Shown here one piece after another: positions 50,001 through 53,000 of a stretch of DNA of 64,000 nt (positions within the stretch are counted from its first letter, which is position 1; the number at the start of each line of letters is the position of its first letter). Under the pieces are notes generated by a model. It had not been told where the DNA came from. It saw only the letters and a program-made list of their open reading frames with translations, and made no database searches. This stretch comes from Phallusia mammillata (Eukaryota), in assembly GCA_965637545.1 (NCBI GenBank), contig OZ281495.1:28644001-28708000 (forward strand). The letters are read 5' to 3'. Made by a program: the position numbers and the translations under genes.

Positions 50001-53000
50001 CTCTACAGAGCAACCTTCATGTGAAGAATGCCTTGGCGAAGATGTACTTGGAGTACTTTGCGCTAGTCGCACCCCTACCACCACTCCACCCAACAACCAA
50101 CGCGATAGCCCTGCTTGTGTTAACCGTCCTACCAGTCCCCGCAGAAAACCGGCAGCTATCAGCCCGCGTGTGGTGGTGCCTTCCCCGCGAAATCCCCAAG
50201 AAATCGTCGAGAGATGTGCCGACAGTTCTGTGCGCGACAGACGGCGTGTTATCCACGACAGTCGAGAGCTGACCAGCCTGTTTAACGATCAGGTCCTACC
50301 GGAAGTTGAGCAATCCTTTTCTGATACTTGGAACGTTCTTCCGGGGGATCAGAGGTCGCAATTGATGAAACAACTCCGAGAAGCTTTACAGATGACTACT
50401 GAGCTTGTGCTACGTAACCACAGAAAGGAATACTGTCTTGGCACTACAACAGTAAACAGTTTAACTCATGTATACCCGCTTCTAATGCGTGAAGTCGAAA
50501 CTTGGCATACAACCGCTGTAAAGAAGATGACGAAAGATATTTTCCCCGATAATTGTTGGGGAGGTAACGAATGCAGCGCCAAAGCCACCATCAGCGTGCC
50601 CCTTGCTCCGACTCTGTGGGAGCCTATGAAGAATTTGATGACTGACTTCGGGGCAAGATGCGATGTTATACCGGGAGTTAGCGTCCAAGATCCCGCCACC
50701 AACTGCACTGCGATCCCCAAGGTTGAGTCGTGTCGACACCATCCTAATTCCAATTCACCACACTGTCAACCCAAGGAGTGCAAGTTTGGCTACCCTGTTG
50801 ATGTAAATGCCTTCTTCAGACACGCCAACGATTCTCAGAAGTTTCTGGAAACTGCCCTTCCACTTACTAAACCAATTACTCATAGTCTTTCCCCAGTGAA
50901 CGCTATCCGTGGACGTTTGGAGCTTTCAGTCGGTGAAAATCAACCTTTTTTAATCCAATACTCCCCGGTGCCTGAAAAAGTCAAAATCAGTTTTCATTAC
51001 ACAGCTGTGACGGAATGCAGTCTTAACGATGCAGCCTGCGCAGGGCGCGAATTTGACTGCAACCCTAGACTCGAGGAACGCATTAGCTCCTGGTTTAACT
51101 CAATCTGGGCTAAACTGACAAAGAAGACGCGGCGTTGCAAGAATCAGCTTCGCAAATACGAAAACAATATCGGCGAGGGTGGACAGCAAATGCGAAAGCG
51201 TCGGAATGCGAGCAACCAGCTTACTCTGCCGATTCCCAAGGAGTGTCGGTATGCGCGTTTGTCGGCGACGGTGCCAAGAGAACTATGGGGAGAGTTGAGA
51301 ACTAGAGCAGAGAACAGAGGCGGATCGTACGTGGACATGCCAGAGCGAATCACATTCAGATCTCTTGACAGTCTTCGCGAGTTCTTTGAAAACAAATGTT
51401 CACTGACGCCTCCTGATCCCGACAAGGCAAACTTTAAAAAAGTCTCGAAAAAGCGGAAGAAAAAGGCTGGTTCGGTAATCCGGATTTTACCATCTGATTC
51501 TCTTCCTTTTGTCATCGAGCGAGGCCGATCGTCCAACAGAATCAGGCTTCACTTCTTCACGCAACGCAAAACCCTGAATAATGGTTTGTGATTTGAGATG
51601 GCAACCCGCTGGTCGAGTTCGCAACGCCGCGAATTGGTTCGCGTATCAAGAAAAGACGTCACCACGAGCATCACCGGCACGTCACGGGCGTGTGACATCA
51701 TACATGAACTACAGGACACGTCATCAGTACTTACATCATCAACGTCATGCGTTTTTTGAACGAAAATTCACTGAGCGATTTCCGTTTTGTCGATCTGTGG
51801 ATATGTGTTTGTCATTTTTGGGCGTCCGAAGCGAAGGGAAGGGGGTTCCCTTGAGTGACGCCTAACGTGTTTTGATATTTATTTATTGTCGACGAAGTTC
51901 CAGACCGCCTGTTACGGCGTCAGTTGGACTCTCCAAGCCCACACAATGCAGAGCGACACAAACAGGGTGACTTATCCTACGTAGAGATACTTTTTATGTC
52001 GTCGTTTGTGTTCTGCTTACGTCACTGTGATGTTTTTTCGCGTCGCAAGTCACGTGAGTGCCTTTCGTCTGATTTCCAACTGAGTTTGGTTTTGCAGGCA
52101 AATACACAACATTGTTTAAGCAGCCTCCGAAAAAACACTTGCCACGATATATAGAGAGTCTCTTAAAACTTGATTTGAGGTTTCGGTTGAGACGCACTCG
52201 TATAGTATAATTGACTACCTCATAGACCGTCGCTTACAGCCGTGTTGCGCCATTATGGTTACCACGCAGTATCAACAAAAATATAAACCATTGAACAAAA
52301 ACACACGCTTTCTTATTCACTTTAGATACAAACGAAATGTAAATGCTTCACCTTGTTGCGACATTGTCCGTTCATCACTATTGCCACACCCACAAACTGC
52401 TTAGTAGCCTAATACACCAACTAGAAAAGCAACCTTTTACCTCTACTCTACAGTCAATATGCAGTGAAAAACATCCAGTATTACACAACACACTGATCAA
52501 AATGAAATGTCCGTCTTACAGAGAACTTATCTTGCAGCGCTCGCCGATTTCTTCAGTGTTTTCCTTGTTACTCGTTCATTGTACATTGTCAAATATTTTA
52601 CCACCTTTCTATAATTTGCCCTTAGCCGCTGGTGCGGTGAGTTTTTTGTGTTTTTTGGTAGCGAACGTATTCGTTCCGCTCATTCGCATTTGCCGCCTTA
52701 CTTTTCTCTCATCTCTTGTTATTTTTTTTTATTTTTTTTTCGTGTTTGTTTACCCTCCACGCAGTATAAATGTTCAATTGTCTTTCTAATAAACGTACAT
52801 GGTAAAGAAGAATTGGTCCCTATTGTGTTTGTGCCAGATTTACGAAAAGTTCACAAACGTTTGAATTCTGCCTGCAACATTTCTTCAAATAGAACGAAAA
52901 CCTTAAAAAGTGAGGTTTTATAGTTAATTTGGTAATCCTTCATTGAAGGAGATGTTGTATGTAGTAATCGAAAAGCTGGTAAAGTAGATGAACACCGCTC

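Follow-up and report, generated by a model that had tools for sequence, protein, structure and literature searches.

We analyzed a 64,000-nucleotide stretch of the Phallusia mammillata genome (assembly GCA_965637545.1, contig OZ281495.1, positions 28,644,001 to 28,708,000 of the forward strand; hereafter, the window), which carries on its plus strand a semaphorin gene with a giant exon of 1583 nucleotides (nt) at positions 50009-51591. The exon, number 16 of the gene model, encodes a 526-residue module followed by a stop codon. Comparison with the sequences of orthologous loci indicates that it is an alternative last exon and not a constitutive one, as a form that skips it and encodes a transmembrane (TM) protein is seen in Ciona, Clavelina, and Styela. 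Because splicing of exon 15 to position 50009 ends the reading frame inside the giant exon, and skipping of that exon gives the TM form, the exon would act as a switch between an anchored and a soluble semaphorin. We assign a probability of about 0.8 to this reading of a class-6-type semaphorin gene, including the mechanism that we propose below for the module. The original prediction, made from the letters of the window, had presented the exon as part of a semaphorin; this core reading stands, with the correction that the exon is not constitutive.

Gene model and the giant exon

The giant exon lies in an open plus-strand frame (49942-51588, stop codon at 51589-51591) of 549 codons, which is by far the longest among the open reading frames (ORFs) of the window. 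The second longest, of 237 codons, is an exon of the same semaphorin gene. With about 4.9% stop codons at this composition, we estimate the chance of such a 549-codon frame at about 1e-12 per start position. The start of the exon was placed at 50009 because a CAG acceptor, with its polypyrimidine tract, runs up to 50008. A spliced model built with canonical GT-AG introns comprises 16 coding exons (3798 nt, 1265 codons plus the stop codon) and reproduces P0024, a public P. mammillata record of 1265 amino acids (aa) in UniRef/nr, except for V125I and Q965H. This record, named after the Ciona locus, was recovered when the Sema part of the Ciona protein served as the query; the series of Phallusia records to which it belongs probably derives from transcript models. 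The two substitutions (codon 125 at window position 23012 and codon 965 at 50689) presumably reflect polymorphism between individuals. Across the junction 47921|50009, both the model and P0024 have the sequence ...QVEVPPP|EQPSCEEC..., in agreement with the earlier claim of in-frame splicing after the PSI region. The claim that the exon is more than six times longer than any Sema or PSI exon is also borne out: the largest Sema exon has 233 nt, and exon 1, which is neither a Sema nor a PSI exon, has 439 nt.

The fusion of the Sema region and the module is not peculiar to P. mammillata. A 4504-nt Logan contig from another species holds P0007, a protein of 1090 aa with both Sema and module, as an uninterrupted ORF of 1090 codons. 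Many introns interrupt the genomic copies in Ciona, the window, and three other loci, and the intron-free contig is independent evidence of a fused Sema-module mRNA. The same fusion is also predicted in Ciona, Clavelina, and Styela. Like its counterpart in the window, the giant exon is a single exon in Ciona (29331-30899 of genomic locus L002) and in loci L003, L005, and L008, and the orthologous proteins and transcripts all end at a place equivalent to the stop codon at 51589-51591. The window gene is the P. mammillata orthologue of Ciona LOC100176831, a class-6-type semaphorin.

Class membership was assessed from the Sema region. The Pfam Sema family (PF01403) matches the orthologues and P0024 with expectation values (E) of 1e-22 to 1e-30, and residues 140-740 of P0024 align to 14 solved semaphorin ectodomains. 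The matches to SEMA6A (E = 6e-66) and Sema6D (7e-64) are followed by Sema1A (3e-51) and Sema3A (9e-49); judged by these match E-values to solved structures, the Sema part appears closest to class 6 (SEMA6A/6D). The PSI domain is weak in Pfam (E = 0.76 on P0007), and a cysteine-rich stretch lies at the expected place. A TM segment and a long tail that follow Sema-PSI with neither an Ig nor a TSP1 domain are found in the TM isoforms of Ciona, Clavelina, and Styela and among the putative TM and tail exons of the window, but not in the module isoform. In Pfam, the 20 module sequences match no Ig family, and the predicted order of helices and strands is not that of an Ig sandwich. The module proteins also show no TSP1 match in Pfam, whereas true class-5 semaphorins in the same search carry PF00090.

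The remaining exons of the model also lie on the plus strand. Coding exon 1 (22639-23077) holds the start codon, an N-terminal extension, and a hydrophobic signal-like segment, and matches residues 1-146 of P0024; exon 2 occupies 23564-23735. Exons 3-14 (42025-47599) encode the Sema and PSI region and were placed by the spliced model, with colinear tblastn matches to the Ciona, Clavelina, and Logan orthologues that carry Pfam Sema. Their positions are 42025-42154, 42975-43073, 43357-43483, 44519-44629, 45238-45332, and 45404-45636 for exons 3-8, and 45757-45873, 46397-46492, 46567-46680, 46787-46910, 47202-47419, and 47531-47599 for exons 9-14. Intron 2 (23736-42024) spans 18.3 kb, with a GC-richer stretch at 36-38 kb (0.48), and contains several ORFs of 120-175 codons, none with a Pfam match. 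Other long ORFs of the window had no Pfam match either, and Rfam gave no match anywhere in the window.

Module and transmembrane isoforms

In Ciona, Clavelina, and Styela, the same loci give module isoforms of 1247-1279 aa and TM isoforms of 1128-1163 aa. The two members of a pair have 724-768 residues in common and then part at an orthologous junction. The Clavelina pair is identical over 768 residues and the Styela pair over 724, with the divergence falling exactly at the end of exon 15. Past this junction, one branch consists of the module and the other of a short stalk, a TM helix, and a proline-rich tail. The TM forms are annotated as "semaphorin-6D-like isoform X3" in Ciona (1157 aa), X4 in Clavelina (1163 aa), and X3 in Styela clava (1128 aa), and the Styela module isoform is X1 (1247 aa). 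Ciona X3 skips the giant exon by joining L002 position 27964 to 32298, and Ciona has a small extra exon ahead of the TM exon. No protein with both the module and a TM segment was found in a search range of 703-2238 aa.

The window has the parts needed for the same choice. Coding exon 15 (47851-47921) is the last exon common to both isoform types, and the alternative splicing branches at its phase 1 donor, G|gtaagt. Candidate TM and tail exons lie on the plus strand past the giant exon, in the same order as in Ciona. The putative TM exon (55962-56103) was located by hydropathy and splice sites; its acceptor has the phase of the acceptor at 50009, its product resembles the TM segments of Ciona X3 and Styela X3, and it may join exon 15 directly. 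A putative cytoplasmic exon (57919-58009) has 53% tblastx identity to L002 33876-33989, an exon of Ciona X3, and the putative last exon (58717-59351), whose product would be the proline-rich cytoplasmic tail, is matched in tblastx and tblastn by the tails of the Ciona, Clavelina, and Styela TM isoforms. We infer from these exons that P. mammillata also makes a TM isoform.

Several observations accompany this part of the gene. Within the proline-rich tail, a stretch at 58995-59120 is 62% identical to Ciona and might serve the TM isoform as a conserved docking motif. Inverted repeats (53230-53279, 53516-53539, and 55728-55777) with the common core TTAAGCCAGTGGTTCTC occur in the intron that separates the giant exon from the TM exon and resemble the ends of small elements similar to miniature inverted-repeat transposable elements. 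In Ciona, the next gene after the semaphorin encodes a phospholipase A2 and lies on the opposite strand (L002 37760-39232); nothing was identified in the 4.6 kb of the window past the end of the last TM-isoform exon at 59351.

Hydropathy scans agree with two different topologies. The module isoforms have no TM segment, and the signal-like segment at residues 113-131 is the sole hydrophobic segment of its kind in the module isoform; the TM isoforms have a TM segment, which is a second hydrophobic helix near residue 800. An extension of about 110 aa precedes the signal-like segment (residues 1-112, window 22639-22975) and is conserved in Ciona and Clavelina. The start of the extension, ..EE[IV]..LR..RG.TV.., is kept in Ciona, Clavelina, and Phallusia, and such an extension is unusual for a semaphorin. 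In Ciona and Styela, there is no methionine just upstream of the signal-like segment. The extension raises the question of whether the segment is an internal signal that is cleaved off or instead anchors the N-terminus.

Anatomy, distribution, and origin of the module

The anatomy of the module was derived from an alignment of the family and two AlphaFold (AF2) models, one of the whole exon product, with a mean predicted local distance difference test (pLDDT) score of 76.2, and one of residues 183-526, with a mean of 82.5. Residues 1-84 (50009-50262) form a small cysteine cluster and a Pro/Thr-rich linker with poor conservation and few alignable columns; residues 1-81 have pLDDT below 50 and are predicted to be disordered. 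Long alpha-helices occupy residues 85-172 (50263-50526), which include the best-conserved motif of the family, NHRxEYCL.... The predicted alpha/beta unit A (residues 185-340, 50563-51030) contains a cysteine-rich loop and the N273 sequon (50827-50835), with pLDDT mostly 86-96 and about 56-72 in the loop. In the models, helices follow at residues 341-387, and a low-confidence loop (residues 391-402, pLDDT <50) holds the sequence RKRR (residues 395-398, 51193-51204), a candidate furin/proprotein-convertase-type site located between the invariant cysteines C376 and C412. The predicted alpha/beta unit B (residues 405-526, 51223-51588) has a Lys/Arg-rich loop and is homologous to unit A: hhalign matches residues 269-334 with 449-521 at a probability of 93% (E = 2.9e-7). 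The cysteine cluster, Pro/Thr-rich linker, helical segment, and two-repeat region that had been read from the translation are recovered in this anatomy, and the count of 19 cysteines and three sequons (NCT, NDS, and NAS) in 526 residues proved exact.

Seven cysteines are invariant, and the N273 sequon is present in 18 of 19 sequences. Both features fit an extracellular, disulfide-bonded glycoprotein. A basic [RK]-x-[KR]-R motif occurs in the C376-C412 loop of 14 of the 19 sequences. The isoelectric point is 9.4 for the module and 10.6 for residues 399-526, past RKRR. Across the three ascidian orders in which the module is found, its identity is 30-47%; to Ciona it is 41-44%, close to the 48% of the Sema region, and the module is under similar constraint. 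From these sequences and models, the module appears to be an extracellular, disulfide-bonded, glycosylated, and basic ascidian domain with about 440 folded residues.

The module has a narrow distribution. An exhaustive phmmer search of 1.84 billion cluster representatives returned 18 related clusters, and overall the module is confined to about 20 protein clusters. Every named one is ascidian, from three orders (Phallusia represents Phlebobranchia), in keeping with the lineage-specific architecture that had been proposed. Three of the phmmer clusters represent long proteins in which Pfam Sema comes first and the module forms the extreme C-terminus; they include Ciona intestinalis XP_018669347 and Clavelina lepadiformis XP_076799945, each of which carries the label "uncharacterized protein LOC...". 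The "module-only" proteins, 427-562 aa long, result from ORF calling on the giant exon. The original prediction had asked whether the module occurs alone or always with Sema: in transcripts the two are fused, and Sema exons precede the module on the same strand in 5 of 5 genomic contexts with upstream sequence. Apparent free-standing copies (P0004, P0010, and the P0002-type locus) all have Sema exons upstream and were rejected as artifacts. The locus of the P0002 type is the Joint Genome Institute (JGI) locus L008. The P0004 and P0010 loci (L005 and L003, respectively) come from one ENA assembly (ERZ22157276), both with upstream Sema exons in the right order, and that species therefore has two paralogous Sema-plus-module genes. 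The module of L003 is P0010-like and that of L005 P0004-like, which places them on separate branches of the family; in at least one lineage, therefore, the duplication involved the whole gene together with its module. The module was in place before the split of the three ascidian orders and before the gene duplication in one lineage.

Beyond ascidians, a close alignment of the family (A3) found nothing in 185,579 prokaryotic genomes or in IMG/VR viral contigs, and in JGI metagenomes it found only three copies of an already known ascidian-type locus. A profile search on alignment A1 returned two known members only; its candidate list was swamped, probably by low-complexity words, and is uninformative on distant relatives. 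The most divergent copy, P0018 (about 20-25% identity), lies at 1402-2751 of L004, a Tara Oceans plankton contig (ERR1726853) of 3.2 kb that is too short to judge for Sema exons. This copy may come from a pelagic tunicate.

Searches for known domains and folds gave no confident match, in accordance with the earlier statement that the module resembles none of the domains known after Sema-PSI. The exon product had no sequence match in Pfam, NCBIfam, or PDB; a HEPN_Cthe2314 hit (Pfam, E = 0.63) was regarded as noise, and the single match of a PDB profile search, at E = 0.1, was rejected. Pfam searches of 20 family members gave scattered matches to single members and no family common to more than one. 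With Foldseek, the whole model was compared to PDB and BFVD and a trimmed, better model to PDB. No match reached E ≤ 0.001 (best E = 1.8e-3, PDB and BFVD); probabilities were ≤0.47 (PDB) and ≤0.75 (BFVD), and template modeling scores (TM-scores) were ≤0.28 and ≤0.44, respectively, the latter value reached by one match of probability 0.75. The weak matches fall repeatedly on two-lobed folds with a sheet wrapped around a helix, namely double hot-dog dehydratases, di-domain aromatase/cyclases, Bet v 1/START-like proteins, and Ups1. Membership in SRPBCC (START/Bet v 1) or hot-dog families was rejected, since the PDB TM-scores fall short of 0.5 and the probabilities are low, and we treat the resemblance of the modeled fold as a lead and not as membership. 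Precomputed tables flag PF26709 (DUF8238) on P0004, P0005, P0006, P0007, P0010, and P0026 and on no TM isoform; the flags are "faint" for P0004, P0007, and P0010, come with no strength for P0005, P0006, and P0026, and are absent from the Ciona and Phallusia proteins. With the Pfam copy that we used, PF26709 appeared nowhere in scans at E up to 10, and the searchable literature holds no paper on it.

These results allow several other accounts of the exon and its module to be weighed. The recurrent two-lobed Foldseek matches and the faint PF26709 flag on six module-bearing proteins could mean that the module is a diverged copy of a known domain (Ig, TSP1, SEA, or PSI/EGF) or a lipid-binding fold (START/Bet v 1 or hot-dog). 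Given Foldseek E-values that are all ≥1.8e-3 with low probability and TM-score, the lack of any Pfam family in more than one of the 20 members, the empty PDB profile search, and an order of strands and helices unlike Ig, TSP1, and SEA, we consider this unlikely. Capture of a transposon, viral, bacterial, or retrocopied host sequence, followed by domestication, would account for a module that forms a single intron-less block in every species examined and has no known older homologue in animals. Ascidians did acquire bacterial genes, for example, that for cellulose synthase. However, the phmmer clusters that carry a name are exclusively ascidian, neither the prokaryotic genomes nor IMG/VR holds a relative, and BFVD yielded no significant Foldseek match. 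A repeat search around the exon found no long terminal repeat, terminal inverted repeat, target-site signature, or flanking direct or inverted repeats; the GC content of the giant exon (0.493) equals that of the other exons (0.496; introns, 0.426); and the phmmer matches include no parent gene for a retrocopy. The sole visible event in the history of the module is the internal duplication that gave rise to part of it. We therefore regard capture as quite unlikely, and the origins proposed earlier (exon shuffling, retrocopy, or domestication) find no support in free-standing copies, relatives, flanking repeats, or foreign GC content.

Accounts that concern the transcript fare worse. The donor G|GTTTGT at 51583/51584, noted in the original prediction as an alternative end of the exon, exists and leaves phase 1, as needed by the TM-exon acceptor at 55962. 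Splicing there would yield an in-frame cassette of 1575 nt (50009-51583), exactly 525 codons, and a membrane-bound semaphorin with the module in its stalk. Nevertheless, the donor GTTTGT is weak, no equivalent phase 1 GT occurs within the final 60 nt of the exon in Ciona (L002), L003, L005, or L008, the longest isoforms of Ciona, Clavelina, and Styela as well as P0024 all stop inside the exon, and proteins combining module and TM segment are missing from the size range searched. The cassette is improbable and would be a minor form at most; as the main form it was rejected, the in-phase GT being unique to the window among the loci compared. Least probable of all, to the point of being barely worth considering, is that the ORF is a separate gene or a relic nested in a semaphorin intron and that the fusion models are read-through artifacts. 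Such a gene would explain why prokaryote-style gene callers give the exon as a free-standing ORF in many assemblies and why it sits in the 8-kb interval between exon 15 and the TM exon. Against it, the frame in the window lacks both an ATG ahead of the conserved core and a separate signal peptide, despite the conserved disulfide cysteines and sequon; the acceptor is good and in the correct phase; Sema and module are continuous on the intron-free contig and in the Phallusia record; and Sema exons accompany the module in all five contexts.

Proposed mechanism and comparison with known systems

We return to the reading of the giant exon as an alternative last exon. We propose that a soluble semaphorin is made when splicing uses the acceptor at 50009, together with a poly(A) site after 51591, and an anchored one when it proceeds to the downstream TM exon. 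By analogy with other semaphorins, the Sema-PSI part would still bind a plexin-A-type receptor. Semaphorins act as dimers, and class-6 ectodomains dimerize weakly in solution; the module may give the soluble isoform stable dimerization or oligomerization through its long helices, and/or its basic unit B may retain the soluble isoform on matrix or cell surfaces. Cleavage by a proprotein convertase in the conserved R-x-K/R-R loop between the units might tune the action of the module, much as vertebrate class-3 semaphorins are regulated by convertase processing of their C-terminal part. In a bolder version, which we hold to be doubtful, a new extracellular fold originated in the stem of ascidians or tunicates, in part through internal duplication, and turned a class-6 semaphorin into a bifunctional secreted pro-protein, from which a convertase would free or re-bind the basic C-terminal unit (about 128 aa) as a separate signaling or ligand-carrying entity.

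Several points weigh against the anchored/soluble switch and its mechanism. No P. mammillata transcript was found for the TM isoform, and the RefSeq isoforms of the other ascidians are model predictions. The first AATAAA/ATTAAA lies about 1.2 kb past the stop codon of the giant exon. The signal-like segment is 100-140 residues from the predicted start, and signal-peptidase cleavage, and hence secretion as opposed to N-terminal anchoring, is assumed. The strict basic motif is missing from 5 of the 19 sequences, and the fold yields no match that could guide function. Finally, plexin binding, dimerization, matrix binding, and convertase cleavage are all inferred from sequence and by analogy.

Semaphorin classes are sorted by what follows Sema-PSI, and the list has been stable for years. 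The ascidian gene resembles class 6 (vertebrate SEMA6A-D, and Sema6 of amphioxus and sea stars) in its Sema-PSI part and in the layout of its TM isoform, with a short stalk, a TM helix, and a long proline-rich tail after Sema-PSI. It differs in the swap of TM segment and tail for a 526-aa module and in the 100-140-aa extension before the signal-like segment. To our knowledge, no class-6 gene has been described in which an alternative last exon replaces the TM segment and tail with a folded extracellular module. Vertebrate class-3 semaphorins are secreted proteins with a Sema-PSI-Ig-basic tail layout, and they use the C-terminal Ig and basic region for covalent dimerization, co-receptor or matrix binding, and regulation by furin. 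The module isoform is likewise predicted to be soluble, with a basic C-terminal region and convertase-type sites, and by this analogy the module may play the roles of the class-3 tail. Unlike class 3, however, the module lacks an Ig domain and is related to the class-3 tail neither in sequence nor in fold, the Sema part is nearer to class 6, and the soluble form would come from an isoform switch and not from a dedicated gene.

Secreted semaphorins of other invertebrates (class 2, and sea-star Sema-SI and Sema-SP) are also lineage-specific, secreted, and non-vertebrate, but they end after PSI or have an Ig domain (PMC6374515), and in the phmmer search none has the ascidian module. Parallels in gene organization are the immunoglobulin mu heavy chain and the soluble receptors made by intronic polyadenylation, in which, as in the ascidian gene, splicing to the TM exon competes with an upstream terminal exon that brings its own stop codon and, presumably, poly(A) site. 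Switches of the mu heavy chain type usually add a short secreted tail, whereas the ascidian exon adds a large conserved folded domain.

No description of the Sema-PSI-module architecture was found in the searchable literature. A survey of semaphorin and plexin evolution included no tunicate (PMC6374515), and Ciona papers that mention semaphorins give expression of "Sema6a" and "Sema3a" and do not mention the module. The earlier description of the module as undescribed holds for this literature and not for the databases, in which the proteins are already present (RefSeq/UniProt) as "uncharacterized protein LOC...". The architecture was probably overlooked rather than rejected. What is new here is that the giant exon is an alternative terminal exon; the sequences themselves are public but unnamed and uncharacterized.

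The module isoform adds a further semaphorin architecture, in which Sema-PSI is followed by about 440 predicted folded residues with no detectable relative, encoded by a gene that also makes a class-6-type TM form. It offers a concrete, testable case of one guidance gene giving rise to contact-dependent and diffusible signals and of how a secreted semaphorin can evolve from an anchored one. Isoform-specific tests are practical, since Ciona and Phallusia embryos are transparent, electroporatable, and amenable to CRISPR. Ascidians belong to the sister group of vertebrates, and, if the bolder version above is true, an independent route from a membrane-bound to a diffusible semaphorin, by way of an alternative last exon, would have been taken in that group.

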